From Oculina patagonica (Eukaryota), in assembly GCF_052425735.1 (NCBI RefSeq), contig NC_135765.1, positions 33,356,001 through 33,420,000 on the forward strand: a stretch of DNA of 64,000 bases. The letters run 5' to 3'. A program made the position numbers and the translations under genes. The notes beneath the pieces are model-generated. The model searched no databases and had not been told where the DNA came from. It saw only the letters and a program-made list of their open reading frames with translations. Of this stretch, positions 4,914 through 52,451 are shown piece after piece (the first letter of the stretch is position 1; each line of letters begins with the position of its first letter).

Positions 4914-7176
4914 TTATCCGGGGGCTGTCAAAGCTTGACGAGAAGGCCCAGCAAGGGCGAAAAAACCACCAATGAAAGAACCAATAGAACGAACAACGGA
5001 CGTGAAGCCATCCCACATGTAGCGGAGGAAAGGTTTACGGACATTACGGCCATAAATACGACCATCTTCTTCTTCTGCGAAGAAAAATTCCCAGTCACCA
5101 TTTCCCGCCCGAATGAGGAACTCTTGTCCAGGCTGCGACAAGATAAAGGCAGCATTGCGCATGTCACCACCATCATTCTGTGCATCAGGGATGAAGGAAA
5201 TGGCTGTACGCAGAAATCGCAGAGTTGTGTAGCCTGTTTCGTCTAGGTACGGATGCTGCCCTTCGTTTCCGCATCTTCTTATAAGTTCTCTTCCCAGAAC
5301 TGGAGCAGTGATTTCGCGCACGTAAATTTTTACGTCATTCGAGTAATGCTGAAAGAGAAGGAGAGAAATAAATGTTTGAAGCGTTATGCATGACTGGCGA
5401 AAACTTAAATATGTATTCTTTGAAGAACTAGGGTAATGTCGGCATAAATGCCCTGCTTATTTTTTAAGTACCTTTCCATTAGACTTCCGGCAAAAATTTC
5501 CGAAAAATTGGATAATATAGAAAGCACCCTAGGGACGGTTCATTTTTTATGAGATAGGGGGAGCTGGTAGGATTTGAGGGGGGGCTATCCCCAAAATATT
5601 GGCTTCAAAGGGGGGGTCAGCCAAAAAAATATGGACTGTAAGGGGGGGTCACTAGAAATAATTATACTTTTAAGTGTTGTAAATAGGCTTCTGTAAGAGT
5701 AAAAATGCTTGCCAGAATGCCCAAAATAACATTCCTGAGGTTCTGAAAATTCAAATTTTCCCGGGGGATCATACCCCCGGACCCCCCTACTTTGTTATGT
5801 ACCAAAACTTAACCCAACAGCTTATTGGTTACAAATGCAGACAACCCATACCAACAGATGGCATCCACAATAAACAGTTAAGGCAATGCCAGCTATTTGG
5901 GGTTGTGATTTTTTTACACTGATACATTCTTTAGTCACAAGGCTCGATATATTTTAATTTCACTTGAGTATTGTTTTTTTTTTGTTGTTGTTGTTGTTTT
6001 TTTTGGGGGGGGGGTCATCGAAAAAATTTGGATTTTGAGGGGGGGGGGGCCAGGTAAAAATTGTCGTTGAAAAAGGGGGGGCCATTATATATAACAGTGA
6101 CTATCTATCAAATCCCACCAGCCCCCCCCCCCTATCCCATAAAAACTGAACGGTCCCCTAGGAGTAGAGGCCTTATCACGGTTTTCGACGCCATCTCGAC
6201 GGGTAGGCAACGCGGTTAAAAATTACAGTGTTTGTATGGGAATCCGACGGCAAATATCTTTTACAAAAATTAAATTCTGGAAAACTTATAAACTGTAAAG
6301 TTAAAAAAAGGCAAAAGCTTTTATTCACTAAGTTTTAAGGATGTAGCTGGGCTAGAAAGCGCTCGGTTACGTTTTTAATTTCCCATACATTTGTCTATAT
6401 TTTTTCCGCAAATTGACATCTTTCGCGGGAAAAAAACGTAACTAAACGCTTTCACATCCTTGGCCAAACTTGGTGAATAAAAACGTTTGCCTAGTATCTT
6501 AACTTTACAATTCATAAGTTGTCCAAAATTCAATTTTTGTAAAAGATATTTGCCGTCGGATTCTCATACAAACACTGTAACCTCTAACCACGTGGCCTAC
6601 CCGTCAAGATGGCGTCGAAGACCGTGATAAGGCCTATTGCTTTAGGCACACTGGACGGGATTCTAGTCATAGCCGAACTCGTTAGTTTAGCTTTACAGTT
6701 AGCTGTTAGCTTAACAGTACGTCGGTATCCCGGTTGAAAAGAGGCACTATGTGAAAAGTGTCTTGCTCCTGAACACAACACAATGATCCCGGCCAGCAGG
6801 CTGTCTATTCGGGCGCAACGTGAATCTCTCTTTGAGCGCCGAAGGCGCGATCTGTGAAGACGCGAGTTTTGGCGAACAAAGTGAGCCGCTGGGCGAGCGA
6901 ATAGAGAGCAGAGAGAGCCTGCTCGCAGACAAGGACCGCTCGATCCGGAGTCTGAAAAGACTACCGTAGGCCTGACCGTAAAAATATAAAATTATATACT
7001 GTTCCTTCAAAACCCTGGGAGCAATTTTGCATGGCTAGGCAAAAATACCGAAAATATTACGTTCTTTACAGCGGCTATTGTCATACCTTTGCCGTTCTTC
7101 CTCTTCCCAGAAAGCCTGAAGATGTCGGTGGCCTCTCTCGCGTGGGACGATAATCTGTTGACCCAAAATTTCCCAT
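4914..7176 (-). CDS. Uncharacterised 174-aa protein, copy A, with predicted N-myristoylation and C-terminal amphipathic helix; exons 7176-7087 and 5348-4914
   Basis: Exon 1 encodes MGNFGSTDYRPTRERPPTSSGFLGRGRTAK and ends at AAG|gtatga. The acceptor cttctctttcag joins in phase 0 to HYSNDVKIYVREITAPVLGRELIRRCG...GPSRQALTAPG*. Two paralogs in the window have the same exon structure, with synonymous changes in the core. Confidence 0.88.
5530..6160. mobile_element. MITE in the intron of copy A
   Basis: TIR tagggacggttcattttttatgagataggggg / ccccctatcccataaaaactgaacggtccccta. Confidence 0.7.
6168..6635. mobile_element. Long-TIR MITE in the intron of copy A
   Basis: aggccttatcacgg ... ccgtgataaggcct with inverted arms longer than 100 bp. 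Confidence 0.75.
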
Positions 7177-7367
7177 CTCCGAAAATGCTTTATAGTGCGA
7201 TCAATTGCAACTGGCAAAAAAAGCGTTTTATCTAGTCAGTTGTCTAGTATTCAGCGACTTAACGGGCGATATGTTTTCAACCTCTCCTATCTGTGCCGAG
7301 TTTGAAATGGCATCTTCGACTCTCGGTCACTAATTTTAATATCTTATGCTAATTGCAGTGTTGTCTA

Positions 7368-7825
7368 CTTTCAGTTTTTTTAGGGTTTTTCCCCGACTTC
7401 TCCTGTCATCAATAAACAATGCCCCCTTCAATTTTTGGGATTTTTCCCCATCTTTTATTTCGCAAATTATGGGATCTTGACGAGTGTCAGTACATGTCGA
7501 ATTTGTTTCAAATGAAATTTACCCAATTCATAAACAGAACATGCAAAATGGAGTTAGAATTTGCTAGAAACGATACACTGCTAGAAACGGTCACTGATCT
7601 TTAATATGGTAATCGAGTGTTGTTTACAGTTCATTTTCTTACGGTTTTTTCCCGACTTCTGCTGTCATCAATAAACAATGTCCATTCAAGTTTTGGTTTT
7701 TCCCCCATCTTTTATTTCCCAAATATGGGGATGATTCAGTACATGTCGAATTTGTTTCAAATGAATTCAACCGATTCATAAACAGAACATGCAAAGTTTA
7801 GTTTAGAACTTGCTAGAAACGAAAC
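7368..7825. promoter_or_regulatory. Proximal promoter of copy A: ISRE-like ACTTTCAGTTT and NF-kB-like sites in a ~190-bp module present twice
   Basis: GGGTTTTTCCCC at 7383-7394 and GGGATTTTTCCCC at 7437-7449; the block ~7380-7575 recurs at ~7640-7825. Confidence 0.5.
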
Positions 7826-8079
7826 ATTCAAAAGTTTTACCATTGAGATTTTTTAGTGTATTATTAAATTATTATTGCAAAGAAGGCTGAATTACTGAAT
7901 TGTAGTACGATTTGTTTGCTTGTTTTATTTGACTCGAAAGACTCTAGCCTTAGCACTAACGTCTCCTATATTAATATAGCTATTTCTATTGTCGCACACG
8001 TGTCTGTTTTCCTCGTGAGGAAATAAGAGGTCAAATAGCAGACAGTCACACGCAGGCTGTAAAAAGGACCAGAAAGGCT

Positions 8080-8111
8080 CGAAACTGAAAGTGATTATAC
8101 TTTCGGTTTCG
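8080..8111. promoter_or_regulatory. Inverted pair of IRF/ISRE-like sites upstream of copy A
   Basis: cGAAACTGAAAGTgattatACTTTCGGTTTCg: two matches to GAAANNGAAAGT about 0.9 kb upstream of the copy A ATG. Confidence 0.6.
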
Positions 8112-8705
8112 CATCCAATATATTGGCGCCAATCGATTAGTCAGTTCTGACTCGACAGCTATTTACCGGTAATTAAAAATTGTGTTCACTCTATTCTGTC
8201 TAGATTTCAAAAGTATCAATAGTTTGACCGCTCACGCGCAGGGAAAAAACCCTTGCTGTATGAACGATTCATCGTGTATGACAACGCAGGCACTAATCTG
8301 CTAAGATGAAATCGTAGCGTTTCTCTTATTAGCGACATCAGTCAAACGAAAAAAAAACAACCAAAAACACTGTCAAACAATCCAATTCTCATTTCGGTTC
8401 ATTTAGTATTAAAGGCAATTCTTTTGAAATCCGTAACGATACAATTTCAATTTAGCTAATATTTTGTATTGAGTCGTTAGGAAAAAGCAACCTTTTGTAT
8501 GAAACCTGTCTTTGAGCCCGCGATTCTCGCAACATTGAACGTGACGTCACCTTGTGACGACAATCAGACATAAAACACTTCGTACGATCGTGGGTGTTCG
8601 TGCAATTGTTTGATGGGCTAACGCCAGCGACCGCCAGCCAGAACGTCTTCGCTTTTTTCCGACGAGGATTTGTGAACCATCACCAGTGCTTGTCTACTAC
8701 AAAGA

Positions 8706-11700
8706 TCAAGACGCTATTTTTGGTTCCTTGCCAGCAAATTCCAGTAAACGTTCTCCAGTAAGGCGATACAACTGCCACTCGTCCAGACACACTGCTCCAA
8801 GCTTCTCATAGAAATCCTTGGCTGTTTTATTCCAATTTAAACAATTCCAGTCAACTCTGACACAACCTTTCTCCACAGCTATCTGGAATTATAAAGTAAA
8901 ATTCAATTTAATGTGAATAAGAGGGGTGGACGCTTATGGCTAGTTGCATTCGTCCCCACTCCTTTCTCTTCTCTCCCTCTCCCATCTCAACACTACGTAT
9001 ACTATCTGTCAATAGGCCATTTTACAGTTGTCTGCTCAGTAACCTGGCCTTTGAATGGAAGTGAGGCTGAAGGTGACCTTGTTTTGATACAGACCTCACT
9101 GCTTTTGTTGTGTTAATCGTGTTGTTCTGATGCTAACTAGTTTTCATTTACATGATAAAGCAGACAGGTTTGTATCAATGCAAGGTCACCTCCAGCCTCA
9201 CTACCATTTAAAGGCCAGGCCACTTGGCAGCCAACTGTAAAATGGACTATTACAGGAGAGTAAGAGAACATGTGAAGCAATAATGTTAAATCTTCAAATC
9301 TGAAAAAATAAAGCCAATCATTTTCCCTGCATGACGGTCACCATGAATGGGGTGTAAGAAGGGGGGTGGGAAGGGGAAAAGAAGGGGGGAGGGGAGGGGT
9401 CAGAGAGGACGAGGATGAGAGGAAGGAAGATTGTAATATATTCTCTGTGCCAGTTAAAGGGAACCTCTGTTGTTTAGGCAAGTTGACGTTGAGTTGTTTG
9501 AAATAATGCCTAAACTACAAATTTTACAGGACAGGGGAGAAGCAGCATTTAATAACAACCGTAAACGGAAAAGATTATGGCTTTTAAATTTCCCGCTCGG
9601 CGCCATTTTGGAATTAATTTTATGACGTCAGTGCGTTGCCCAATTGTTTCACACAAAAGAACCTCTGCTTTCTAATAAAAGCGGCAACGCAGTGACGTCA
9701 TAAAATTCAAAATGGCGGCGCGAAGGAAATTTAAAAGCACAAAAATTGACAAATCCAGTATTCTAATGAAAAAAGGAATCCGCGACTTTAAACAACCAAA
9801 ACGATTTTAGACTGTGGTAAACTTATTATTTTGACCAGAACTGTTTTACAGTCGAGGTTCCCTTTAAATAATTGATGGAAGGCTCACTAGAAAAAGGTGA
9901 GGCCAGTTTTGATATCAACATGAAGTGACAAGGATAGGAGCCCATAGGCTCCTAGGGGTATTGCTGCTTTCCCAATGAATTTAATGATTATACTACAGTG
10001 CCTATATAGCATGACTTGGGTCACCATGCAATACTGAACTCTTGAAGCAAAGTGGAAAAAAGAGATTGGCAACTGCAAACTAAATAACATTCTCATTCTC
10101 ATTTTTTTTGACTTAATATATCAACAACTAGCGTGGATAACTTTGTTTGTCTTACATGACACCATGCATTTCACCACCAGTATGTAAGACCCGATCAAGC
10201 TACATATAAATTCATCATTGTTTTTACATACAACAAGGAATCTGTAAAAATTAAAGGACTTTACAGGTCTAAAAAAGTCTCAACCTACCGACGAGACTCG
10301 TCTTAACATCTCTGTGCCAATACCTTTTCCTGTTAAAAATTGAAAATAAAATTAATTAATATAAATGGATGAACAAAAACAAACAAACATTCCAAATGCT
10401 TGAAAATTCAGCATGAATTGGAGCACAATAAGAAATTATTAATTTCTGACAAATTATTAAAAAACTGATCTTTTATAATGCAACGACAACAAGCACTCTC
10501 AAAGGAAGTGTCTCCAAAAAAAAAATGAAAACTAAGCATTTCAAAGGTACAGATAAATTTCAGTATTTTTGTTGGACATCCCCCTTTATGACACTTTAAG
10601 ACTTATGCCTAAGTTGGTGTATGAGAGGTACGGTGGCCTATTAGTGGTTAGGGCACTGGACTCATGATCAAACATTCTGAGTTCAAGCCCTGCTGGGGTC
10701 ATTGTGTTACAAGTGTTCTTGGGCAAGACACTTTACTCTCATCGTGCCTCTGTCCACCTAGCCTGGGTACACACACGTATTTTTGGCTGTTGTTTCCTTT
10801 TGCCGAAAAATAACTATTTTTCAGTGGAGAGAAATGAGGGTCAGAAATACGTCTGTGTTCGCAGGCTACTGTCCACCCAGGTGTACAATTAAATGGGTTA
10901 ATAACCAGAAAATTTAATGTGGGTAACCCTGTGATGGACTAGCATCCCAAACAGGAGGGAGTACAGTAGAAATAGCCCTAGTCACTTCATGCTATTGAAA
11001 ATGGGATAGTTTCCGGCCTGATGGGCCACTAGGGTCAAACACAGACTGTACCTTTTTACCTTAGTTGGTGTAACTCTTTTTTAGACCAGCTCTGAGTGGG
11101 GGTGGGGTGGGGGGGGGGGATATCAGAAGATCATCACTATTAGGTGTATTTTAAATAAAAGGAGTCAGCTGAGAAGCAGTTGAATATTGTTAAGTGACCA
11201 TTGTCTTCTAAAGTGTTTTAACTTCTTTTGTTGCCAATAATCGCAGATATGCACCTGCTCAGGGGATAAAAATGCTTAAACAGGCAACAACAACCTGATA
11301 CTGATGTAGAGTGCTTATTATTACAGTTGTATACATAACACATTAATCAACTAAGTTCTGTATCAACTTCTGAGAGTTATTAAAAAGGTTAAAATAATGT
11401 CAATTACAAAATAATACAAAATAGGTTCTGTTGTTTACACTGTACCTCTACATGTTGGGTCAACATAAAGGTCTTCCAGATATAGAGACCGCCCCTCCCA
11501 CGTGGAATAGATGTAAAAAAATAATGCATAACCAACTGCCTTTCTCTTTGGTAAACAATGATTTTCCTCAGGGGAGTGAAGCTCTTCTGCTATCAGACTT
11601 CCAAACCACGGCTTCTCCTCTCCGAACCCATCTCTCAGCATTTCTGCAAGATACCATAATGATAAGAATTGATTTAACACCCTCCTTCCAATAAGAGGCA

Positions 11701-13726
11701 TTTTCCAATAGGCACTCCCCCTTATAGCTGATGCCCTCTTTTAAATTAGCACCCCTATCCCAATAAGCATCCCCTTCCAGTAAGGGTCTCTATTGTAAAA
11801 GTGACATTTAAGACATATTTAGATGAGCGAATTGTGTAGTCTGCTTTCCCATCTGAATTAAATATTAAACACTTGAACAAGGAAATGGTGTTATGACTAT
11901 GTGAACCCCTATTGTTACAGTTGAGTATCTGTCAGTATCAGATGTTCATTAAAGTGCTTTATCGCATAATCTGAAAAGAAAAATAAGTGCTCTGTTCCTA
12001 ATAGCACTCTTCTACATGTGTATAAGCACTCGCCCTTGGGCTTCCAAGATCTAGAGTAAATTAACACTCTGAGCACTAAATTTAATCATGGCAGTATACA
12101 AAACTGTTGATTGTATGTTTGTGATTGAGCCAGTAGTGCACATGCAGACAGTTTGGAACAAGTTTCCATACTCCCAGCATTTTTGAGGTTGTTCTAAACA
12201 GCAATTTTTTATCAATACACTTTTACATAGTCATTAGTCAAGTATAAAGAGATCAGGTCGTCACATGGCTGGAAGTGTTGGTTTGAGTGCCTGGGGGATA
12301 AGGTCAGGTGGTTCAGAACATGGTTCAGTTTATTTGTTGATAAAATTAACCTACACCACAAAATGGCATCCAAAAATAATTTAAATTTTGTATCAGTTTA
12401 TTTGGCTCCCCACCCATATTCTTTTGGGTAGAGTCCTTCTGTAAGTGGACAGTCTCTGTACTCAGTCATCAGATGTCCCAGCTACATGTACATACACAGA
12501 TTATTCATTTTCACCTACCCATGAGCAGACAAATAAATTCTAATTGCAGACACTTTTTCGGTCCCTGAGGGTGTCCGCTTATGGAAGTTTGACTGCAATA
12601 TTACCTTCTTCAGTGAGTTTTACTCTTGATTCAGGCTCTTTTTCATACACAGCTAAATCCTGCAAAATCAGAATGGAAGGCGTTTACACAAACTGGTATT
12701 CTTTTTTGAATGTGAAATAAAATTTAAGAATAAGTCTAGAAAGAAGATGGGGGACCACATGAGGAAAATTGGTAAACTGGCAAATTGGATACTGACCCCT
12801 TAACCGACAACTCTGGCAAACACACTGTCATTTTTCACCAGGGTTGTAACTAGTAAGAGGCAAGACAAGGCACTTGCCTCATCTAGATTTTCACCCAAAA
12901 TTTAAAACAAAATATGTTTTGTTTGGAAAATAATCCCCAGTTGAACAAGATTGATTTTTCTCACGAAATACCTCATGAAAATGTCTCTCAAAGAGTTTAA
13001 GAGCTTCAAGGTTTAAACATTTTCTGGAGGGCATGACCCCTGAGCCCCAAGCGAAATCTGGCCTCGTCTATGGCAAAGGTCTTGCTTGGGCTCTGTTCAC
13101 AGAAGCGGATACAGTCAACTCTCTCTGAAATGGACATCTTCAGGACTGGCTCGTCTCATAGTGAGTTTAGTTACAGTAAAATGGGTGACAAAAGGCGGGG
13201 ATGGGACCAACGCCAGGTGTCTGTCTTAGAGAGGTGTCCGCCTTATAGAGGTGTCTGTTAAGAGAGAGTTGACTGTACAACTATCAATGAGCAGAAATTT
13301 ATACTATAATATATTAGCAGCAAAATTACTGTCGGGCGGAAATGCGCATGAGCAGACCATAATTTGTAGGCCGTTATTTGTGGATCACACAGCGGGCTCT
13401 CCGTCAATGAAAAGGAAGACAAAATTGCATCAAATGATAATACAGTCTTACATGTAGAGAGGGGTTTGGGCACCCCTCCCCCCCCCCCCCCCCCACCCTC
13501 TCCCCCACCGTGTAGTGTAGTTTGGCGCGTGGACAGGCTTTTTGAATCAGCATTGAGTAAGCTTATTGATGTGAAATTCTAGTACAACTAAGCTAGTAAA
13601 CGGTGTGTAGTAAACTACTCTCGGCGCCGGTGATATAGGGTGGCACATTTTATGATTTACCTTTATCATTCGTAAAATATCTGGGACATCCTCTGCTACT
13701 GCATCACGTATCCGCCAGTTTTCCAT
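8706..13726 (-). CDS. SAT2: Diamine/thialysine N-acetyltransferase (SAT1/SAT2 GNAT family, SAT2-like), 178 aa; exons 13726-13661, 12659-12605, 11643-11446, 10329-10289, 8882-8706
   Basis: Spliced product MENWRIRDAVAEDVPDILRMIKDLAVYEKEPESRVKLTEEEMLRDGFGEEKPWF...YIYSTWEGRSLYLEDLYVDPTCRGKGIGTEMLRRVSSIAVEKGCVRVDWNCLNWNKTAKDFYEKLGA...KIAS*. All introns are GT-AG with consistent phases (exon lengths 66/55/198/41/177 nt). DGFG, YSTWxG, LEDLYV, RGxGIG (acetyl-CoA) and WN..A..FY..LGA motifs are present. Confidence 0.93.
9011..9251. mobile_element. MITE in SAT intron 4
   Basis: aataggccattttacagttg ... caactgtaaaatggactatt. Confidence 0.7.
9458..9863. mobile_element. Kolobok-like MITE with TTAA target duplication
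   Basis: ttaa|agggaacctc ... gaggttccct|ttaa. Confidence 0.75.
10625..11060 (+). mobile_element. Degenerate tRNA-derived SINE with an internal insertion
   Basis: Box A-like ggtggcct..tggttag, box B-like gagttcaagccc and the conserved cttgggcaagacactttactctc core. Confidence 0.65.
13110..13277. mobile_element. Tc1/mariner-like MITE
   Basis: tacagtcaactctctct ... agagagagttgactgta. Confidence 0.7.
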
Positions 13727-13912
13727 CTTTTTTCAGTCGCAACTGACTATATAATCCTCCACAAAGGCAAGAAAAGTGTGACACAAACAATCGAATCTTG
13801 CAAAAATCAATCCGCAACCCCGCAACCGGTCAACACAACTGTCGAAGCACTTTCCGTACTCAGAGATTGTTGAGCCCCCGTTCTGTCTTACCCGCGGTAT
13901 GTTATAAAATGG

Positions 13913-15221
13913 CAATCTCGAGCCCAGAGTGTGCCCCGGCTCTCCGGTCCGTCAGCGGTTGGTCAGCGGTAGGGTCGCCGGTACACACTCTGGGAAACTG
14001 AAATGTATTTCTCTTTCTCTATTGGCCCTCACAGAACAATAGAAATCAACACGGAAGTCTGAAAATCTTCCCGGAAGTAAACCAAACCGGAAACCCTGGA
14101 AAAACATTTTTTCGTTTTCCATGATCAAATGTTCAGAAGTATCAGCTTAATTTTGTAAAAACACCTAAGAAATCGTGATATGGCTCTAAATAAATGAAGT
14201 ATTTTCTAATTCTACCCTTCTCTTTGAACGTAAAAGATACCATGAATAAAAAAAGGACTTCTTTTAAACGTCGATTCTGAACGGAGTTTTAAAACAACAA
14301 CGACGGCGTCACCATGGACAAGGTTGATTGAAAACTCAATTTATAGTTGACTTACAAATCTCGCTACAACTGCTGTTTTCATTCAAATCTCCGTTCCGGT
14401 GAAAAAACTGAATATGGCAGACAGTGCACGATTCAAAATAATTACTAATGACGCAGAATTTGAACATTACGCGTTGTTGTTTTGCTGAAGAAAAGGAATT
14501 GTACAAAAATTATAACACACGTGTGCACGTGCTGAGTCGCCAAAATGCTAATTACGCCTTTTGAATAGCGTTGACCGGTGTACATGTGGCCTTCAACGTC
14601 TTTATTAATATCACCGCCATTCAACGAGGAAAAAATTGTTTGCTCGAAAACATGCAACCTATCCTGAAAAGATGCACTGTCAGCGAGAAGCCTTTCCAAT
14701 ATACAAAAAGTCGCCAAACAAAAATATGCGAAAGTCGCCAAACAAATTTTTTTTTATGAACAGAACAATAGCTTGTCCGTGCGTTGTATATTATGTAAAT
14801 TTTTTAGCTGTCCTCTGCAAAACAACAACGGCCGGACACACGCACGCAGTCGTCACAGACGGAATCCTGGAAGGCTAACAACACCTTTGATTTAAAACAA
14901 ACATAGCAGAATGCTCACGAAAGAGACTAAAGGAAATCAAAACACCATACGCTCTTTTGTTAACTCTCTCTTTTGTTAACTGCAGGACGTTATTGTTACT
15001 TTTGTTGCTTCAATAAACACCAGTAATACTGTAGTTCAACTTTCTCGATTTACTTCCGTTCTGGGAAATTTACTTCCGCTTAGAGCTAAGAGCATGCGCA
15101 ATAAAAACCGGAAGACCAAGGTTCTACCTGGAATCGACCTGAAATTGATCTGATCGATTCCAGTTTCCCAGAGTCCATCCCATACCGCTGACCGACTAGA
15201 TGGACTCTGGGCTCGAGATTG
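13913..15221. mobile_element. 1.3-kb non-autonomous DNA transposon just upstream of the minus-strand SAT
   Basis: TIR caatctcgagcccagagt / actctgggctcgagattg; 9-bp TSD ataaaatgg; empty site at ~28892-28900 in the other SAT copy. Confidence 0.75.
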
Positions 15222-16091
15222 ATAAAATGGCAGGTAGTCGACCTAGTACCCAGCTCTCTCTTTCGGTCGAACAATATACGACGAGAGGGCAGTGCGTGTA
15301 ATGGCTGTCCCCAAGTTATGACTTACAAATGAGGAGCAATATGATAGTTTTTAAACGAGGGAGGAGATGATAAGGGGATTAGGGGGTGGGAAGTCTACGG
15401 GGTACGGACATCGGGTAGTATTTTCTCTATTTTGGGGGAAAGCAAAAAATACCTCCCCACCCCCTCCACGGCCTCCTTCTCTCAATTCCATCCTTAGTTA
15501 TACAGCGCTTCAAAACTACTCCACCTTATAAAAATAGAGGATCCCCATATACCAGGGTAGGAGCAACAGCTCCTCAGGGTCCCAAACGGGTTTAGGGCTC
15601 CAGGCCGAGTCCAGGGCCTCAGCTAAGAGCCCAAAAAGCTGTAGGGTCCAGGTCGGGCTCCGGTCCCCCAGAGCTCCGGGCTCTCTAGTAACTATTCAGG
15701 GCTCCGCATTCTGCAGCACGGGGCTCCAAGCAGCAAATTACGATGGAGACTGGGCTTAACGGCGTCGTGTTGTATTCACGACTGCTTACTAACTTTACGT
15801 TTTCTTCGAGTCACAATACTCGTTTACGAGAAAATGACGATTTACCTCCCTGACGAGCTCCAGCCATAAAAAAGCCACCATTTTTTGGTCAATGCGTTTT
15901 CGCCTATCTTCACACCACAACGATTAAAAACGGTCCTCTGCGTTTTTCCTCGTCCACACTAAAAAGCACGAAAAAAGTTGTTTTACTTGTTTATATGTCA
16001 CGTTATAAAAGGTGTATTTTTATTGAGAACGAAACATTAAAACAATGCAATGTTAGAGTGGAGAACCGCAAAGAAGTACACCGAAGTGTTT

Positions 16092-16550
16092 ACCATTTTC
16101 TCGATTAAACGTCGGACCCCGATTAAACGCCGGCCTCGTATAAACGCCTGGTCAAAATTGCTATTTTTTAAATAAACGCCGGGGCGTTTGTTCGAGGTCC
16201 CGGCGTTTATTTAAGGTCAAACTAACAAGTAAATATATTCTGTTTGTTACAAATCTTGATTGCAACATAAACTATTCAATCCGTAATAATGCATCTTTGG
16301 GAAATAATCGCCTTTGGATACCCAGGGACAGTTTTTCGGGGCAGAACGAAGAGAAAAATCGTCCCGCCTTAACAAACTGCCCCTTGGTCTCGAAGATCGG
16401 TAACAATAAATCAATCAGAAAAATTGGCAGAAAATTGCAGTCCGTTAATAAACGCCGGGCTCCGATTAAACGCCGGCTTTAAATAAACGCCGAGTTCACC
16501 AAGCCAAGTTTGAAATAAACTCCGGGGCGTTTAATTGAGAAAATACGGTA
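16092..16550. mobile_element. MITE with internal taaacgcc repeats; duplicate at ~55273-55731 and related copy at ~45824-46516
   Basis: taccattttctcgattaaacg ... cgtttaattgagaaaatacggta. Confidence 0.65.
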
Positions 16551-16893
16551 CTTCCCTAGTGGACTCCCCAGTGCTCTTCGATTCAGTTCACGATAAGGCA
16601 ATAACATCATGATGACGTCATCGCCTACAAAGCGAAACCAAACTCAAGGGATTGTGGGTCAAAATAACCAATTTGTTTGGGCAGGAGTCATGGGCTCCTG
16701 GTTTGGGAGAGAAAATAGAAAATATCAAAGCCAGACTGTAAGCTAACTTGCACTCGCAGTCTATTTTTCTCTCGAATTTCAGTCGGTACCACCATTCTGC
16801 GTTCGCATTCCTGGGGATATAAAAACGCTCGTCGGATATTGAGAAAAAAGACGGACTACAAGTAGACTAAAGCCCACTGGACCTGTACTACTG

Positions 16894-17413
16894 ATGGAGT
16901 CAGCAACGGACGCGAGGGAAAAGCCTCGAGAAACCTCCCCTCACATCAAAGTCGGCTGACGGTTCGTTTCGTTCTTTTTCACGGCGATCTCGCGGCACCG
17001 CGAGTGTGGAAGAAAAAGTGAGAAGACGACGGCAAATTCAAGAAAGAACGGAAAAACTTAACAATTGGAGTGAAAACGAACGCAAAATACAACAACAGCT
17101 TACGGAGCCAGCAACGAACAGGATAAGCCACGAGAAACGTCTTAAATTAGCTGCTTTGGCCTGGGCTTGTACCCTCACACCACCAACAGGCTTTCCCAAT
17201 GATCAGCATGAGCCACCGTCGGATGGTTCGTTTCTGACCGTTTCTCTCTTTTTCATGACGTTCTTGTAAAATTTGCACCGCTTAGCTCCATAAAACACAG
17301 CGCTAACATTAAGTTAATTTTTTCGTTTCATAGACGAGAGCCTGGAAGACAAAGTGAGAAGAAAACGGCGAGAGGCACTGTCTTACAAGTGGGATGAAAA
17401 CGAAGGCAATTGA
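16894..17413 (+). pseudogene. Other copy of the putative orphan ORF, with a 4-nt indel near 16912 that puts the ATG out of frame
   Basis: acggacgcgagggaaaag here versus acggacgggaaaag near 56090; the ATG frame ends as MESATDAREKPRETSPHIKVG*. Confidence 0.25.
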
Positions 17414-19141
17414 CATGTATTAAAGATTATAAACTAAAGTAATCGACAGGAGTTTCCGCATATTAACACCATACTAACATACTTAATTATGCATACAACT
17501 CTCATTCTATTTACAACTACGGTTTCGATACCGTTCGCCTGTGAAGAATTATGTGGAAAAATTTGCATGTTTAATTTTAACCACAAAAGTTTGGGGCTGT
17601 GCAGAAATCTTTCTCGTGTATAAATAAATTAAGTCTCTTGCTTAATTGATGGTAAGAAACTGCTCATTGTGCTCTTGTCACTGGTAACAGAAAACTTCAA
17701 GAGTGCTATAGATATCATATCCAACCCTTGGTTTGATAGAATACGAAGCCATGAGCCGTGACCTTGGAAAATTCTGCGACATATCGAGACATACATTTTC
17801 CTATCTATAGCGTTCTTCAGAGTCACTCAATATCAGCCAATATCATAGTTTGGATTGGCTAAGTTCTTTTGATTTATAAGAAGTAAAAGATAAATCGAAC
17901 TGCCGCCGAATTTCTGACCGTTCGTAACATTGGTTTGTAACTTGCTTTTAATAAAAGATAAAGCTACAGAAAATTAAAATTCAAAATTGAAAACCAGCAC
18001 TGCACATCCGTAAGTTAACTTTTTATCCCGGACCGACATTTGAATGCGATCACATGAAGTTTTTCAGCCCGTTTGCCCGGGCCATAAAATCGCAAACGTC
18101 TTTTTAAGAAGATTTCTTCTGGAGGCCGAGCTGTTTACAAATGGAGGAGGAGAACTGAAGGGATCAGGGGGCGGGAAGTCTACGGCATACGGAAAAAAAG
18201 AGAGGCCTGAGAGGGGGATGGAAATAATGAAACATTTCTCGACATCGGGTACTATGGGTCAGGAGTTGTTTAATCCATGGACCAGTAGAAAGTAGAATAT
18301 TGCTGGCCTGGTAACTAATTCAAAGCTCTTCATGTACACATAATGACACACATGACTACAGCATCCAAAGTAATATTTATTCCAATTTGATGTACTTAAT
18401 ACAACACGCGAGCTCCGCGGGGGGTCGAACTAGTTTGCTGAAGATGATATGGGATACAACAAATAAATCATGGTTTAGCAATTTTTGGCCATGACTTCTA
18501 TACTGTGGCGGATTTAATTAGAAATCAAATAAAAGTGTACTAGTTAACAGTGTAAGGTGAGAAGAAAAATGTGTCCCAAAGCTCAGTAGATACCAATGAT
18601 CATCCGACACATGGTGTTAAGGGAGTGGAGGGTGAAACAATGATTTTCCAAAGAGATCTACTCGCTATGATGGTGAAAGCAAAACGGGGATGGATTTCAG
18701 CGAGACCAATACTTTGTACTCACAAACAGCTACGCTCTTCAACCTGATTAGCTGTTGTGTCGCAAGATAAACCACCACCAGATCGACCAACAGATGTGCG
18801 TGAAAACAATAAAAGAGATTCTATCCGGCGACACAAATAACATCCTGCCTTGACATGATGTTTGGTTTTATTTCACAATTTCTATACAGTCTTAATAATA
18901 ACTTGAAGCCCAGAAGAAGTTCATGCCATTTAATACACACTGTGCAGCAAGTACTATTTTCAGGATGGAGTTTCCCAGCTAGTGATTTATTTGTAACATG
19001 ACGTCACCTTCTGACATCAATCTGACATACAACATTTGGTACGCTCGTGAGTGTTTGCCGTGTATATTGTTTAATAGGCTAGTTGCAAGTTTGAAAATCT
19101 TCCCTTTTACTAAAGAGGTTTGTGAGCCACATTGGTGCTTG

Positions 19142-26434: not shown

Positions 26435-26655
26435 AACAAAAGACGCGCAAAAGAATTCTACCTTTCGTAACAGAATATCGCCCTTCTGTGCCTAATCTTA
26501 AGAATATTCTAATGAAAAAGTGGCACCTACTAGAGTATTAACCAGTGCTAAGAGTACAGAAAAGGGAGATCGTTTTAGGATATACTCGTTACAGCAAAAC
26601 TTTGAAGGTCCACAATTACAAATCTCGACCAATGGGAGTCGTGTTTGGCCTGTCT
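26435..26655 (+). mobile_element. 3' end fragment of a Penelope-like retroelement
   Basis: KRILPFVTEYRPSVPNLKNILMKKWHLL...YRKGRSF*DILVTAKL*, the typical C-terminus after the RT domain in such elements. Confidence 0.55.
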
Positions 26656-36420: not shown

Positions 36421-36482
36421 CGAAACTGAAAGCAAATACTTTCAGTTTCGTACGAAACTGAAAGTATTTGCTTTCAGTTTCG
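36421..36482. promoter_or_regulatory. Perfect 62-bp palindrome made of four GAAACTGAAAG ISRE-like sites upstream of copy B
   Basis: cgaaactgaaagcaaatactttcagtttcg-ta-cgaaactgaaagtatttgctttcagtttcg equals its own reverse complement. Confidence 0.65.
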
Positions 36483-36892: not shown

Positions 36893-36990
36893 GGGGTAAA
36901 AACCCCAATACTGAAAGTAGGCAATGTTTATCAATAGGAGTAATAAGAGAAGTTGGGGAAAACCCCAAAGCCCTAACTTGGGGTTTTCCC
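36893..36990. promoter_or_regulatory. Cluster of NF-kB-like sites upstream of copy B
   Basis: GGGGTAAAAACCCC (36893), GGGGAAAACCCC (36955) and GGGGTTTTCCC (36980), plus ACTGAAAGT, 190-285 bp upstream of the ATG. Confidence 0.5.
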
Positions 36991-37176
36991 GACTTCTCCC
37001 TTTGTTCTAGGCAAACAACGGTACCTATTACCACAAGATCAGTATAAAATCATTGACCAAGACTGAAGGGGCCATTCCAAACTCGAACAGGAAGAGGTTG
37101 GAATCACCGCGCGTTCACTCGGTTGAGTCAGATACAACGTTTTTCCCTTGCCAGTTGATCACACTAAGCTTCGAAA

Positions 37177-38708
37177 ATGGGCGGAAATTCTAGTTCAAAA
37201 AACAGTTACAGTCAACCACGACAAAAGCCACCGACATCTTCAGGCTTTTTGGGAAGAGGACGAATGACACAGGTATGAAAACAGCCGCTGTATAGAACGT
37301 AACATTTCTGAGGAGGGGTGAATCTAGGTTCGCGAATCGGCGTATTTAGCTTTGCGTTAAATTGAGCTTATTCGCGGAATTTGCGGACCGCGGATAAGCC
37401 AAGAATTTTCTCCTGGATTTTGGTCTCTATCTGTTTTGAAGCTCGGATTGTGGATAGTGAAAGAAAATGACGGGTCTTAGGTTGGCCTTGGTCGGTACTC
37501 TGGCATTTTGTTTATTCGTTTTTCGGACGAAACTACAATATTGCAATCTTTGACCTTGTCACAGGAACTGTCGACGCTTTACATAATAACGAAATGCTTC
37601 ATGTTTCTGAAAACGGGGAAAGCGACGCCAGATATGGGCTATTTGGGCTCATGATTGCTATTTAGAATTACAATCGTTCAAAATCTTTTTAGAGAGAAAG
37701 CCGAGTATAGTATAGCGGGGGCTTGTCACGCAGTCTTGCCAGCGAAAACAAATTTGCAGTGATCGAAGCTGGATCCTGGGTAGACTTGCCCCAAGTTAGT
37801 TATAGTTACTTAAATAAAATCGCTTTGAAATAAAATCGCTTTGAAATCAAGCGCGAAAGAATCGCCTTTGAAATCGCGCGCGAGAGATCGCGCGGGATTC
37901 ATTTCTGTGCACGCGCACGCGAAGGAAAACAAATGACACTTGCCGAGGAATGGCTCGGAACGAGCGACTTGTGTCACTTGCAGGACATCGATTCTAGCTG
38001 ACGTTTTTTGCCGCGAAAATATTGCATCATTTCGTGTACATTGAGTTGGTTTCTTTTATCGTGTTGACGTCAGTTTCGTGCGCCGTGAGCAGCTGACGTG
38101 CGCTGTGGCGTGTGTTAAAATTGCGGTTTTCTTCCCTTTTTTGTGAAAAATCATACTCAAGGCCCTTGATGGCTTTCTCATTTCTGTAAGATTTAAAAGG
38201 GACAGGCACAAAAGAAGACATTTGTAAAGTTTGTTCCCAAACTGGTTTAAACTGCCGATGTGAGAAGGAAACAAGTCTATTCAAGAGGTAAAAAGTTAAA
38301 CTTTGTTTTGTCTTCAAATGTGTATCTGGAGGTGCTCCGGTCCAATTACAACACTTGTGGACGGAGCAGAAGACTAATTACAATCTTAGAAGGAAAAATT
38401 GCTTGTCAGTACCAAGACCAAAGACTGACTTTCTCAAAAAGTCGATTACTTATGAAGGGGCCACATTATGGAATTCTTTGAATAACGAGGCCCGCCTTAA
38501 AGAATCGTTGGCAAGTTTCAAGGGTGCTTTAAAAGTATTAGGGATTTAGAGGCTGTGTATTTTCGTTTGTTTGGAATGCTTAGTTTGTTGTCTTTATTTG
38601 TTATTTAAGGGTTTAGTTAGCTTCAATAGTAATTTGTAAACACGACCACATCAGCTATGCTGCAAAACATTTATCGTGTATAAATAAAAGCTTTTATTAT
38701 TATTATTA

Positions 38709-38752: not shown

Positions 38753-39885
38753 TATTAAACGCAAGCTTGTCTCGCGAGCAGCGCGCGCTTAGTTGGCAAG
38801 CAGAGCGCGCTCAGTAAGGTCGCGCGTAATAATATGATTGACATAATCTTGATGGCGTTAGTTACCGGTGGAAAAATCCACCGGTGACGCCACATTTCAG
38901 AATTGGCGCGCTGCAGGTGAGACAAGCCGCTCCGCCATTTAGTTTCTCATGCCCGCGCACGCCCTCCCTTTCCGTATCCAGCGGTCTCCTGCGAATCTAA
39001 CGAGCGACTTGTAGCAAGTCTAGGTCCTAGGCTTTGACAGGCCTGAGGGGAGAAAGCACAATGAAAGCCAATTTGGCAAAAAGTATCTGCATAAAAACGT
39101 AAATTTTAAAAAAAGAAACGAGAAAACAAAAAAAATCGACTACAGGAAGTAAAGAAAACCGGCAAAACAAGTAGAGAACTTTTCGGTTGTCGGCTATTAA
39201 AATAGTTCCTGGTTTAGACGTCCATTTGTAGTTTTCGCTAATTGTTAGCCTCCTGCGCAGACACTCCTTTGGCTCGTCACACAATCTTTTCTAGATTGTC
39301 ACACAATCTTACCCCGACACGCAATTTTTCCTCGTCACGGAATCTTTTCGAAGTTTTTTCGATCGTGTGACGAGCCAAAAGAATGTCTGCGTAGGAGGCT
39401 AGCTAGTTGACTGTCTCGAGCATTTTATTTAATTCCTTTCCTTTTTTTAATTTCAGCAATACCATCGTGACGTAAAAATATATGTGCGCGAAATCACTGC
39501 TCAAGTTCTTGGAAGAGAACTTATAAGAAGGTGCGGAAACGAAGGGCAGCATCCCTACCTAGACGCTACAGGCCGCACAACTCTGCGATTTCTGCGTACA
39601 GCCATTTCCTTCATTCCTGATGCTCAGAATGATGGTGGTGACATGTGCAATGCTGCCTTTATCTTGTCGCAGCCTGGGCAAGAGTTCCTGATTCAGGCGG
39701 GAGATGGTGACTGGGAGTTTTTCTTCGCAGAAGAAGCAGACGGTCAGATTTATGGCCGTAATGTCCGAAAACCTTTCTTCCGCTACGCGTATGATCGTGT
39801 CAAGTCCGTTGTTAGTCGTATTGGATCTTTCATTGGGGGATTGTTCTCCATTGCTGGACCGGCCTCTCGTCTTGCCTTGATGTGA
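37177..39885 (+). CDS. Uncharacterised 174-aa protein, copy B; exons 37177-37272 and 39457-39885
   Basis: Exon 1 MGGNSSSKNSYSQPRQKPPTSSGFLGRGRMTQ|gtatga; acceptor tttttttaatttcag|CAA; exon 2 QYHRDVKIYVREITAQVLG...SRLALM*. Homologous to copies A and C. Confidence 0.88.
38340..38756 (+). mobile_element. LINE (L2/CR1 group) 3' end in the intron of copy B
   Basis: NYNLR..LSVPRPKTDFLKKSITYEGATLWNSL..SLASFK followed by a (TTA)n tail. Confidence 0.7.
39246..39401. mobile_element. Small MITE in the intron of copy B; decayed counterpart in the copy C intron (~51830-51966)
   Basis: tagcctcctgcgcagaca ... tgtctgcgtaggaggcta. Confidence 0.6.
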
Positions 39886-42754: not shown

Positions 42755-45700
42755 CCTTATTCTTACTAATTTTCGCGAGTACTAATTTTTGCGATTTCAA
42801 ATAATCGCGAAATTTAGTACGCGCGAAAAAAGCATTGCGCGAAATTTAAACACGCGAAACTTAGTACCATATTTTATATCAAAACAATAAAAATTTGGAA
42901 TATTTGGAACTGCACCTATCTACCTTTAAAAATATATCTCTCCATCCTGTTTTTGACTAGCACCCTTCCTCTGATTACTGTTTCGAGCTTGTACATTGGT
43001 TCAAAACCTCTTAAGAGCACAGGTTTCCTACGGTCAAACATATGTCGGTAAGAGTCCTTAAATGGATTTCGCTCATACTCTTACCATGGGTAGGTCTCAA
43101 TATGAAATAAATCACAGTATACTTTGTTTGGCTGAATATCGATTTGTTTTCGAGAAAATCGATAATTCTAAAATCCAGCAAAATTGACGCTTTCGGAGCT
43201 CAAAATTTATGCCGAGTTTGTTAGCTTCGCGTCGTAAAATAAAGCACTCTGGAAGAAAAATACCTATTTAATATCGAAGAATAACATCAAATTAGTACGT
43301 CGAAAGCAATTTCTGCTCTTGAAGTCCTTTTATCTACAAAATATAATTAAATTTATTCGACACACTTTTGATTTAATTCAAAATAGGTCAAACTTATCGC
43401 TTTATTAAAGTATGAGCGAAGCGAAATAAATGGCCGAAAATTTGGTACTAGACAGATAAATGATTGTTCTTTTCGATACTAAAAGGATTTCCTAGGGAAA
43501 TGATTTAGTGCGATGCTTTCAGATCTCAAAGTTGCTTAAAATTCGTTAATTTAACCGACCGTGACATTGTTGATCTTATCAACATTATGTAAACAATCCA
43601 CGCAAAGGTTAATTTTCCCCATGTGAACTTCAACTGAGTAAAATAAAAACATAGACTTGCTTACCGTGGTGTTCGCTGATACATTGTAAATCCTGTTTTC
43701 CTCATTTACGACAAAACCTAAGCCCTCGGCGAAGCTGTTATCCAATTTTCTTGACGCGCCATTTGTAACTGATTTCCACGTCTTGAAGTGACAGTTCTTT
43801 TCCATGCATTCTTGAAAACAGTCCAGTCTTAACTGATCAGCGTAAACAGGAATACGAAGTACTTTGCTTTAAATCAACTTAAAGCTTAGCAGCAGGGGTA
43901 GATAAATCGATACGGCCGGCGAATCTTCGTTTCGAAAACCGTCATTTGAGATTTGTCGGCCCTTTGTCCTGCGGTATGCAGATAATTAATTCACACTTGA
44001 GTAACTTCCGGCACATGAAATCGACAACCACCGTGACCAGATAGCACCTAACCTGCGATCAGGCTTACCCCTCCACCGCGAGAAAAATAACGCCTGATCG
44101 CAGGTTAGATAGCACCCAACTTTTCGAAATATTGGTCGAGGCACTATTTTTATCATTTTAACATAAGCTCTCAATGAAAAACTTTTGGGCTGAACTTGTA
44201 ATAAAGTTTCACTTCAGTTAGCCACCGTTCGAGAGAGTTGTTAAATCATGAAATCCGGGTGGAAAGTTCTTCTGTTGCGTTGCTTCGCTTTGTTTCATAT
44301 TTTTTTATCCAGTTCTTACCCTTGTTCAAATTCTTGTCCCTTCTTCAGTGGAAAATTTGAAACGACGTTAAAATCCGAACTGAGTTGGAGCCGGTCCCGA
44401 AGGTACCCGTTTCAGAGAGAGTTGGCTGTGGTTGGATCCGTCTCCCGTGAATGTCAGTTAAAAATATATATTCTGTGTAGTCTAGCCTGTAAACAAGCTC
44501 TCCTTCTTTCTCCTGTGGAGATTGGGCGAAATAAAAGCGGGAAGGAAAGGTGGGGAAGGAGTGGGGGAAAAAGGGACCATATATCATGTATATGCAGTTG
44601 TAATACCAGTCACGGTAAACAATTTATAATAAAACGCTGAACATTTATGACTGTTTACACCAAGGTGTATATTGGTGTAAAAATAAAGGAAAGGGTGCTT
44701 TTCACTTCATTAGATTAAAGCTAGGTGAGGAAAAGTACACGTAATCAGAAGTTTGTTATGGACTTCTGACGTGATGCCATATTTTGTATTTATTTCTGCA
44801 AAGTACAACAAAGCATTTATACCAAAGTAGCATTATTGAAAAAAAAAATGAGCATAATTACAGTTGAGCATTATATCGGACAAAAAACAAGCATTGTTAG
44901 AAGCATAACATTCCCTTTTTACCAGCGTAATTGGAAGGGCTTCTGGTATTCAGTTAGAAAGAACTTGCATTCAAAAGATACCGCGTTCTAGAAACAAGTC
45001 ACCCCGTTTTGGCTGCTGATATTTTGTAACTTTTGTGTGTTCAAAATACCATATCTCGTTCTAGATATCGTCTGATATTGAAAATCCCGTTCTAGATCGG
45101 GAACCCAAAACCACGATCTCATTGGACGGCACAGAGCCGTTTTTGGGGAATACCCCAGCTTCGACAACTCCTTCCCAATAAAGTTCGCCTATTGAATTGA
45201 GAATTAAGGTGATTATAAAGTTATTACTTTATATCTCTTGTTGTTTGGAAACTTGAGTCGTATTATAATTACAAACGTCTTATTTACGAAGGAATATAAT
45301 GCGGATAATATTTGAAACTTAAACCGTTTTTCCCCTAATAGCTTCCAAATCAACTCAAAAACACACCGGAAAACAGGTTTAAAAACAAAATATTTATATA
45401 ATGACTATGATATTTTTAATACATTTGGGTCCCCTGACGGCGAGGCGCTTGTCTCTCCCCGCAAGCTCTGGCGGGGGACACCTTCCCTTGTTTTCGCCGG
45501 ACCCCAACAGAATATATATATGGTCATATTTTTTAACATTCACAGAAGACGGATCCAACGATAACATCTTAGATTTTGCTTTCACCTGTTTTGCCTTGAC
45601 CTAATCAAGAACTTGGACAAAGGTAAGAACAAAAAAAACTATAAAGCGAAGCAACGCAACAGAAGAACATTAGACCCAGGAGTTAAAAGCGCTGCCATGA

Positions 45701-50539: not shown

Positions 50540-50676
50540 GGGGGAATTTCAATATCGAAAAAAATTCGAAAAATGAACCGAATGATTCATTAACATTTCC
50601 TTATTTAGCCTTATTTTGAATATAGATGCTAGGGGAAAAATAAAACTGAAAGTGGGCAGAATTCGGGAAAAACCCC
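50540..50676. promoter_or_regulatory. NF-kB-like and IRF-like sites upstream of copy C
   Basis: GGGGGAATTTC (50540), AAACTGAAAGT (50643) and GGGAAAAACCCC (50665). Confidence 0.5.
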
Positions 50677-50864
50677 TTATCCGGACTTCCGCCCATTGTT
50701 CTAAGCAAACAACAGTACTCCAATTACCATAAGATATATATGACCAAGGCTGAAGGGGGCACTCCAAACTCGAACAGGAAGAGGTTGGAATCACCGCGCG
50801 TTCACTCGCTAAAGAGATACAGCGTTTTTCCCTTGTCAGTTGATCGCAGTAAGCTTCTTCGGAA

Positions 50865-52451
50865 ATGGGAAATTCTAAGTCAAAAAACAATTATTGTCAA
50901 CCTCAACAAAAGCCACCGACATCTTCAGGCTTTATGGGAAGAGGAAGGATGACACAGGTATGAAAACAGCCGCTGCAACTTTTTTGAGGAGGGGTGAATC
51001 CAGGTTCGCGAATCGGCGGATTTAGCTTCAAAAAGCGCACGGTTTATGGTCTTTGCGTTAAATTGAGCTTATTCGCGGAATTTGAGGACCGCGGATAGCT
51101 AAGAATTTTCTCCTGGATTCTGGTCTCTATCTGTTTGATGTTCGGATTGTGGATCGTGAACGAAGTTTGATTTTCTAAACTTAGGTCGTCTTAGCCTGCG
51201 TAGCTGGCGGTATTGTTTGGTTTTAATCACGGCTGCGGAGCTCGTTGTCGCGGCTTCACCGCTTGCTTGTGCGCACTTTAAAACCCAAAAATACCGCCAG
51301 CTACGCAGGCTAAGGTAGTCCTTGGTCGGTACTTTGGCGATTTGTTTATTCGTATTTCGGACGAAACTTCAACTGCAATCTTTGACCTTAAGCTTTTTAC
51401 TTGAACAAAATGACGGAATGCTTCATGCACTGAAAACGGGAAAATGCACGGCAGGTATGGGCTATTGGAGCTTATGATTGCTATTTAGAATTACAATCGT
51501 TCAAGATCTTTTCACAGAGATAGCTGAGTAGCAGGGGCTTGTCACGCAGTCTTGCCAGCCAAAACAAATTTGCAGTGATAGAAGCTGGGTCCTCCCTTGC
51601 TAAAAAGTAGGGGGAGTCAGTTAGGTATGGGAGAAAAACAGGCCCGAAGAGAGAAAGCACAATGAAAGCCAATTTGACAAAAGATATCTGCATAAAACAC
51701 AAATTTTACAAAAAAAAACAAAATCGACCACAGGGAGTAAAATAAACCGGCAAAACATGTAAAAAACTTTTCCGTTGTCGGCTATTAAAAAAGTTCCTGG
51801 TAAGAAATCGACTTGTAATTTTCACTTGTAGTTTTCCTGCGCAGACATTCCTTTGGGTCGTCACACAATCTTTTTTAGATTGTCACGCAATCTTTTCTCG
51901 TACGCAATCTTTTCAAGATTTTTAGATTGTGTGACGAGCCAAAATAATGTCTGCGTTGAAGGCTAGCTAGTTGTCTGTCTCAATCATTTTATTTAATTCC
52001 TTTAATTTTCCTTTTTCACTTTCAGCATTACGATAGTGACGTAAAAATCTATGTGGACGAAATCACGGCTCCAGTTCTTGGAAGAGAACTTATAAAAAGA
52101 TGCGGAAACGAAGGGCAGCACCCCTTCCTAAACCGTACTGGCCGGAAAACTCTGCGATTTTTGCGTGCAGCAATTTCCTTCATCCCTGATGCTCAAAACG
52201 ATGGAGGCGACATGTGCAATGCTGCCTTTATTCTGTCGCAGCCTGGGCAAGAGTTCCTGATTCAGGCGGGAGATGGCGACTGGGAGTTTTTCTTCGCAGA
52301 GGAAGCAAACGGTCAGATTTATGGTCGTTGTGTCCGTAAACCGTTACTCCGCTACATGTGGGATGGTGTGAAGTCTGCTGTTCGTTGTATTGGGGGCCGA
52401 TTGTTCTCCGTCGCTGCACCTGTTTCTCGTTTTGCCTTGCTGTGGTATTAG
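50865..52451 (+). CDS. Uncharacterised 172-aa protein, copy C; exons 50865-50957 and 52026-52451
   Basis: Exon 1 MGNSKSKNNYCQPQQKPPTSSGFMGRGRMTQ|gtatga; acceptor ttttcactttcag|CAT; exon 2 HYDSDVKIYVDEITAPVLG...RFALLWY*. Intron and 3' flank are shared with copy B (tandem duplicate). Confidence 0.88.
51192..51312. mobile_element. Hairpin MITE in the intron of copy C
   Basis: tagcctgcgtagctggcggtatt ... aataccgccagctacgcaggcta. Confidence 0.65.

Follow-up and report, generated by a model that had tools for sequence, protein, structure and literature searches.

A coral gene family with a predicted N-myristoylation start and a core domain without described relatives

The 64,000-nt window analysed here, the whole of a stretch of Oculina patagonica contig NC_135765.1, carries three related two-exon genes, which we name c1 (minus strand), c2 and c3 (both plus strand). 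Their longer second exons were located through open reading frames (ORFs) at 4914-5321 (minus), 39484-39885 (plus) and 52053-52451 (plus), each of which is only part of a spliced frame that encodes a product of 174 residues in c1 and c2 and of 172 residues in c3. The three first exons open with ATG GG. and close before a GTATGA donor, exon 2 lies directly 3' of a polypyrimidine tract and CAG (a ..TTTCAG acceptor), and the resulting GT..AG junctions are all in phase 0. A tblastn search finds exactly three copies within the window. Their exons are given below, with the c1 untranslated regions (UTRs) and intron; X1 denotes a public RNA run.

7087-7176, minus strand: c1 exon 1, coding (MGNFGS...GRGRTAK), then the GTATGA donor; from sequence and an RNA contig junction
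7177-7318, minus strand: c1 5'UTR, RNA-covered to 7318; from the X1 contig spanning 7087-7318
5349-7086, minus strand: c1 intron, 1738 nt, GT..AG, repeat-rich; from the RNA joint 5348/7087
4914-5348, minus strand: c1 exon 2, coding for the entire core and tail; stop at 4914-4916, 3'UTR reaching at least 4744; from sequence and RNA
37177-37272, plus strand: c2 exon 1, coding (MGGNSS...); equals the NCBI model, junction letters in an X1 contig
39457-39885, plus strand: c2 exon 2, coding, including the stop; from sequence and the NCBI model
50865-50957, plus strand: c3 exon 1, coding (MGNSKS...); equals the NCBI model
52026-52451, plus strand: c3 exon 2, coding, including the stop; from sequence and the NCBI model

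Transcripts bear out the structures of c1 and c2. When contigs of public RNA runs were aligned to window positions 4600-7400, a 337-nt contig of X1 matched 5244-5348 and then 7087-7318 with a single mismatch and an exact joint (5348|7087); the skipped 1738 nt are bounded by CT..AC as read on the plus strand and hence by GT..AG in the direction of c1, a minus-strand gene. A second X1 contig contains, in reverse complement, the exact junction of c2 exons 1 and 2, and contigs of runs X2 and X3, from a different study, omit the same 1738 nt as the first. Both c1 and c2 are spliced as predicted and are present in one and the same run. Since c1 RNA reaches at least 7318, the ~140 nt upstream of its ATG are 5'UTR and not promoter, as this region had initially been read. 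The spliced c2 and c3 products are identical to the O. patagonica models ACROYT_G029733 (P0004) and ACROYT_G029734 (P0008), both labelled 'hypothetical protein' at NCBI, so that independent gene models with the same exons already exist, and c1 is represented solely by an exon-2 fragment from another assembly. The introns of these genes are rich in high-copy elements.

The three products start with MGNFGS (c1), MGGNSS (c2) and MGNSKS (c3), keeping Gly2 and Ser6 in every case. They also have in common an invariant PPTSSGF(L/M)GRGR stretch, a conserved core of ~105 residues and a hydrophobic, basic, amphipathic tail, and they end in ..TAPG, ..LALM and ..LLWY, respectively. In these respects the original prediction was accurate: its first exons, phase-0 splicing, three starts, invariant motif, quoted core and tail are all found where it placed them. 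The N-terminus is polar and has no hydrophobic core, which speaks against a signal peptide, and a secreted product was rejected for that reason.

The description of a three-copy family holds for the window but not for the genome, in which a profile search detects at least 12 loci, all on the same chromosome: three in the window, eight at 25.77-25.88 Mb and one at 15.66 Mb. The exon-2 frame is intact in most of them, and no first exon was found within 1.5 kb of exon 2 for the genes of the second cluster. One locus of that cluster (L008, C8:25848991-25852344) has a core nearly equal to that of its neighbour L004 and a shorter tail in another frame, and is probably a pseudogene or a tail variant. 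Pairwise ratios of nonsynonymous to synonymous substitution rates (dN/dS) among c1-c3 are 0.21-0.30 for the core and 0.4-1.0 for the N-terminus and tail. Between c1 and its counterpart in another assembly (L014, discussed below), the coding sequence gives a dN of 0.010, a dS of 0.183 and a dN/dS of 0.06, and between clusters dN/dS is ~0.1-0.25 with dS near saturation. The protein core is under purifying selection. The many synonymous changes that had been noticed in the core are real, and none of these three sets of comparisons shows any sign of diversifying selection on the protein.

Relatives of c1-c3 extend well beyond this genome. A word-indexed protein search returned 86 of them, all annotated as 'hypothetical' or 'uncharacterized' and none with a Pfam domain, and every match with a named source is a stony coral (Oculina patagonica, Desmophyllum, Porites, Acropora). 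An exhaustive profile search of 1.84 billion representatives gave 125 matches, the weaker of which (hmmsearch E of 1e-9 to 1e-4) form a second, distant branch with the consensus EINKRxLGKxIxKxCGNEG...LRRLLQ..I...W.NAE..IYD...SG.G.KF. Its sources are the octocoral Dendronephthya, the hemichordate Glandiceps, the amphioxus Branchiostoma and the bivalves Argopecten, Mercenaria and Mya, and all of these proteins are uncharacterised. Alignment of the two branches by hhalign gave a probability of 99.3% (E 1.3e-20) over 105 columns, that is, over the whole core. In the 56 coral sequences a Cys, a Gly, a Glu, a second Gly and an Asn are invariant. Across 91 aligned sequences from four phyla, one Gly and the Glu of a G-x-E-G loop remain invariant, and conservation exceeds 90% for the Cys, for an Asn and for further glycines; several distant members have Val or Ile in place of the loop Cys. 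The invariant TSSGF(L/M)GRGR stretch occurs in part of the stony-coral branch.

Gene structure follows the same pattern. In Dendronephthya, Glandiceps and Branchiostoma, a first exon of 15-27 codons bears the MG start and the second exon carries all else; a two-exon structure also occurs in Porites, and tandem paralogues lie beside the gene in Dendronephthya, Branchiostoma and Porites. Both the intron position and the two-exon layout are conserved in three phyla. Judged from these sequence matches, the family is larger and older than originally thought, with members in stony corals, octocorals and bivalves as well as in a hemichordate and amphioxus. As regards domain arrangement, some of the relatives P0087, P0185, P0188 and P0099 have two tandem copies of the domain, and in one 885-residue relative the domain is C-terminal, and a PTSISGFLERRR-type motif occurs twice ahead of it.

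The core had been described as containing no recognisable domain, and extensive searches agree. Pfam gave no match to c1-c3 at E values up to 10 and no known domain in ten distant or long members, and the 91 members yielded only scattered matches below the cut-off, none common to more than five of them; those to CSDE1, Glyoxalase_2, Pertussis_S1 and MavL, sub-threshold and scattered, were taken as noise. Sequence searches of the PDB with a single protein and with the family profile found nothing. AlphaFold2, supplied with the 56-sequence alignment, modelled residues 35-140 with a predicted local distance difference test score (pLDDT) above 90, in the order of one strand, helices and a four-stranded antiparallel meander, after which comes a C-terminal helix whose confidence declines; a core-only model from the 91-sequence alignment reached a predicted template-modelling score of 0.80. 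Foldseek comparison of the models with the PDB, BFVD and Swiss-Prot AlphaFold models returned nothing at E <= 0.001, searches of the ESM Atlas by features and by shape with two family members found no relative (template-modelling score <= 0.41), and no known pore-forming or lytic fold was matched in the structure searches. AlphaFold DB clusters contributed uncharacterised proteins only, which we take, from their accession codes, to come from two Pocillopora, a scallop (E 4.6e-7), an oyster (E 1.8e-5, root-mean-square deviation 2.9 over 101 residues) and several reptiles (E 7e-5 or weaker, at lower identity). Bet v 1/START, PAS, cystatin and NTF2-like topologies, which we considered as candidates, are absent from the structure-search results, and a full-text search of the literature found no paper on this family. 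As modelled, the core is a confident, compact alpha/beta domain without a described structural or sequence relative, and none of the searches matched it to a housekeeping family or a transposon ORF.

Two kinds of lipid-anchor signal accompany this domain. The N-myristoylation pattern PROSITE PS00008 reads G-{EDRKHPFYW}-x(2)-[STAGCN]-{P}, with Ser or Thr preferred at position 6. It is fitted at Gly2 by GNFGST, GGNSSS and GNSKSK of c1-c3, respectively, and at the N-terminus of 29 family members. Spliced MG starts are found in Oculina, Porites, Acropora, Dendronephthya, Glandiceps and Branchiostoma, and the coral sequences that lack one are mostly unspliced ORF calls running through the intron end. 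With Gly2 and Ser/Thr6 conserved over several phyla, the MGxxxS start pointed out in the three local copies turns out to be a family feature from stony corals to amphioxus. In ten distant-branch members, of which one is a named bivalve model and the rest derive from unnamed contigs, the domain is immediately followed by a terminal CaaX-like box such as CLIC, CILC, CCVM, CTIF, CILF, CTIL and CCVS, and none of the ten starts with MG; conversely, c1-c3 have no C-terminal CaaX box. This either/or distribution of MG start and CaaX box is the best evidence here that the domain may need membrane placement, and it makes membrane tethering likely. The tail of c1-c3 has a hydrophobic moment of 0.5-0.67 and a net charge of +3 to +6. 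Its 19-residue Kyte-Doolittle maximum is 1.3-1.4, and the free energy of its insertion into a bilayer, summed over residues, is estimated at +4.4 to +7.2 kcal/mol. Low hydrophobicity and a positive insertion energy together indicate that the tail is not a transmembrane segment.

Taken together, these observations lead us to favour, with moderate confidence, an N-myristoylated, peripherally membrane-tethered family of cytosolic proteins, whose ~105-residue undescribed core most likely serves as a binding or regulatory module. In this model c1-c3 belong to an expressed, tandemly clustered family of ~170-residue cytosolic proteins, in which Gly2 would be N-myristoylated during translation. The myristate and the basic amphipathic C-terminal helix would then hold the core on the cytosolic face of a membrane, where it may act by means of its invariant G-x-E-G loop (CGNEG) and the conserved residues around it. 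The TSSGF(L/M)GRGR stretch between anchor and domain might be a short docking or phospho-regulated motif.

Several points weigh against this model. The tail helix is modelled with a pLDDT that falls from 77 to 41. Amphipathic, basic and not transmembrane, the tail has the character first ascribed to it, but it is not conserved outside stony corals, in a family whose domain goes back much further. MG start and CaaX box are both missing from several distant members, some of which may be incomplete models. Finally, 'binding or regulatory module' is the default reading for a domain without catalytic signatures, and the near-invariant Cys beside an invariant Glu could mean an enzyme.

Motifs for IRF and NF-kB in the promoters had been part of the original case for an inducible innate-immune effector. 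The putative elements, with strand where one is assigned, are the following (ISRE, interferon-stimulated response element).

36955-36990: c2 proximal promoter, a GGGGAAAACCCC palindrome and GGGGTTTTCC (kB-like), ~80-110 nt upstream of the likely transcript start
37043-37049: c2 TATAAAA box, proximal promoter
7383-7394: c1 counterpart of the c2 proximal-promoter element at 36955-36990; c3 has one too
7334-7347, minus strand: c1 TATA-like box, 16-29 nt upstream of the c1 RNA 5' end
36390-36481: upstream of c2, five IRF/ISRE-like cores of the form GAAA(C/T)TGAAAG, of which a 62-bp palindrome contains four
36421-36482: perfect 62-bp palindrome of four GAAACTGAAAG cores, upstream of c2
8081-8110: two IRF/ISRE-like cores in inverted orientation, ~770 nt upstream of where the c1 transcript begins

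The proximal regions of c1-c3 align at 70% identity and have in common a TATA box and two GGGG(A)4-5CCC(C) palindromes. A strict kB pattern is met only by the palindromes of c2; c3 has a strict kB-like match at 50756-50765, situated at the likely start of its transcript or downstream of it. Over the whole window, 14 kB-like sites occur versus 6.7 expected, and the pattern GAAANNGAAAS yields eight IRF-like cores versus 3.3 expected, seven of the eight upstream of c1 or c2. By gene, c1 has two such cores, c2 five (585-676 nt upstream) and c3 none, and the four palindromic cores of c2 derive from one duplication. The inverted pair of c1 is followed by an insertion and then by sequence common to the c2 upstream block (..tcgtactacaattcag..), which indicates that the element predates the split of c1 and c2. 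In the only orthologue examined, that of Porites, the upstream 1 kb contains no kB-like site and one IRF-like core. The c1 promoter block with its G-rich palindromes is itself tandemly duplicated (7324-7577 and 7588-7826, 82% identity). These putative regulatory sites are common to the local copies by descent, and TATA promoters with kB-like and IRF-like sites would fit inducible expression. The motifs first reported are present at the local copies, but c3 is without an IRF-like core and the Porites gene without a kB-like site.

The local copies also raise the question of haplotypes. Assembly gaps lie at 53-272, 22114-22613 and 54648-55147, and the second of them has the following position.

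22114-22613: assembly gap, intergenic, in no family exon or intron; the sequence on its left recurs on the right of the other large gap (54648-55147)

To the left and to the right of this gap, the nearest exon is ~15 kb away, and no reading frame is affected. Blocks of ~6.1 kb at 15967-22113 (6,147 nt) and 55148-61282, each adjoining a gap, are 99.79% identical, which renders the order and orientation of the piece bearing c2 and c3 uncertain. Moreover, the c1 region (2297-15927) is collinear in inverted orientation with the c2 region (49150-27647), and identity rises from 70-88% close to the gene to 97.9% at the far end. What lies between the gaps could be a genuine inverted segmental duplication, part of a scaffold placed in the wrong orientation, or a second haplotype kept in tandem, and c1 and c2 may be two diverged haplotypes instead of paralogues. 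In another assembly a c1-type gene is present on a ~5-kb contig (L014, JADOBR010063415.1, GCA_044670265.1), which was compared with window positions 3415-9013. Identity to the window is 98.6% in the flank downstream of the gene, versus only 81-87% for the gene, intron and promoter, with a sharp boundary near window 4176-4769. Among RNA runs, words of c3 exon 2 (52026-52451) reach 0.95 in run X19 only and ~0.08 in other runs of the same study (P2) and species label, and c1 words are distributed differently from those of c3. This unevenness suggests variable expression, haplotype divergence or presence/absence of the copy. As for the rest of the window, a 331-residue minus-strand ORF at 62050-63045 with DUF3504 and Phage_integrase matches (E 1e-25 and 5e-9) probably belongs to a tyrosine-recombinase (Crypton/DIRS-like) mobile element, and three plus-strand ORFs at 26520-27365, 28342-28788 and 44248-44640 (281, 148 and 130 residues) have no Pfam match.

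These data allow the initial idea of an inducible immune effector to be weighed, in which NF-kB and IRF would activate the genes, and a host membrane, or one enclosing a pathogen, would be damaged by insertion of myristate and tail. The TATA box and palindromes shared by all three promoters, the excess of IRF-like and kB-like sites in the window, and the strong divergence of the gene region between assemblies next to an almost identical flank are all in its favour, as are the uneven c3 words; the tandem clusters are in keeping with it, tandem amplifications in corals being enriched for immune families (PMC10236652), though this is background that does not bear on the present family in particular. 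However, selection on the core is purifying rather than diversifying, the four palindromic IRF-like cores of c2 amount to a single palindrome, c3 has none, and the Porites orthologue is mostly free of the motifs. In addition, the tail is confined to stony corals whereas the domain is far older, nothing resembles a known pore-forming or lytic fold, and the uneven run shares are equally explained by haplotype divergence or presence/absence. We therefore consider the effector unsupported and unlikely. A more far-reaching proposal is doubtful to much the same degree: that the CGNEG domain is a truly new fold predating the cnidarian-bilaterian split, in a lipid-anchored immune adaptor or effector induced by NF-kB/IRF, with tandem hyper-divergent haplotypes under balancing selection and the structure-only reptile matches as remote members.

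The conserved residues of the core could alternatively belong to a membrane-anchored enzyme, namely a thiol-dependent hydrolase or transferase acting through the Cys and Glu of CGNEG, possibly a very remote OTU/papain-like deubiquitinase. The invariance of Cys, Gly, Glu, Gly and Asn in the 56 coral sequences, and of the Glu and one Gly in the 91 sequences of four phyla with Cys above 90%, would suit an enzyme. Nevertheless, papain-like folds have their Cys at a helix N-terminus, whereas the Cys of this family lies at the C-terminus of helix 1, it gives way to Val or Ile in several distant members, no His is conserved family-wide, and Pfam offers no match, not even a consistent weak one. A catalytic role thus appears improbable.

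A tail-anchored integral membrane protein, for example of the mitochondrial outer membrane or the endoplasmic reticulum, would make the MG start incidental. An Arg-flanked hydrophobic stretch of 15-19 residues does lie within 30 residues of the C-terminus, and many coral members have a recurrent ..ALT.. end after it. Yet the Kyte-Doolittle maximum and the insertion energy of this segment, computed as described above, do not suit a transmembrane helix, Arg, Ser and Gly occur throughout it, and the retention of Gly2 and Ser/Thr6 over several phyla is unexpected for an incidental start. We regard such an anchor as very improbable. Derivation of the ORF from a transposon or a virus can practically be dismissed, and so can an artefact of gene prediction that repeats have multiplied: the copies do lie among repeats, with introns full of high-copy elements and a tyrosine-recombinase element in the window, but they produce spliced transcripts, keep their intron position and two-exon layout in three phyla, evolve under purifying selection, match nothing in the viral structure (BFVD) or Pfam libraries, and resemble each other only over gene and promoter, without terminal repeats.

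The preferred model of a myristoylated, membrane-tethered module has well-known counterparts. Src-type SH4 regions and MARCKS provide 'myristate plus basic' anchors, and TRAM/TICAM2 and LAMTOR1 are N-myristoylated peripheral membrane proteins or adaptors. Like these, c1-c3 would combine a Met-Gly consensus start, the lack of a signal peptide and a second weak membrane element, in a layout of small anchor followed by domain. Unlike them, the second signal of c1-c3 is C-terminal and not next to the predicted myristate, and their domain has no similarity to SH3/SH2, TIR, roadblock or other known adaptor domains. CaaX-prenylated proteins of the Ras type resemble the ten distant members that end in C-a-a-X or CC-x-x after the domain; they differ in that c1-c3 have no CaaX box and the family domain is not a GTPase. 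The design is thus familiar (a lipid anchor, a second weak membrane element and a small domain), whereas the folded domain is not.

Among the weak structural matches, which are at noise level, the only named fold to recur is that of OTU deubiquitinases (Crimean-Congo haemorrhagic fever virus vOTU, 3phx; OTUD3, 4bou; SnOTU, 8cmr). A conserved Cys close to a helix, together with a beta-sheet, is common to the OTU fold and the core, but an OTU/papain-like protease was rejected for want of a significant fold match, with the Cys at the end of helix 1 and no family-wide His. The alpha/beta sandwich of REDD1 (3lq9) was set aside as well: with a Z score far below the level of unrelated best matches and 5% identity, it gives no evidence of kinship.

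Finally, 'dark' gene families are common in stony corals and often stress-responsive (Stephens et al. 2026, PMC13044578). Ours is likewise a conserved, expressed, lineage-expanded coral family without ascribable function, and it was not found in the text or supplements examined of that study; unlike most dark families described there, it gives a high-confidence structure model. As corals hold many stress-responsive genes of this kind (PMC13044578), a well-defined and confidently modelled family with a clear biochemical handle offers a useful, tractable example. Should the promoter motifs and the haplotype divergence prove meaningful, it might even represent a new component of cnidarian innate immunity.

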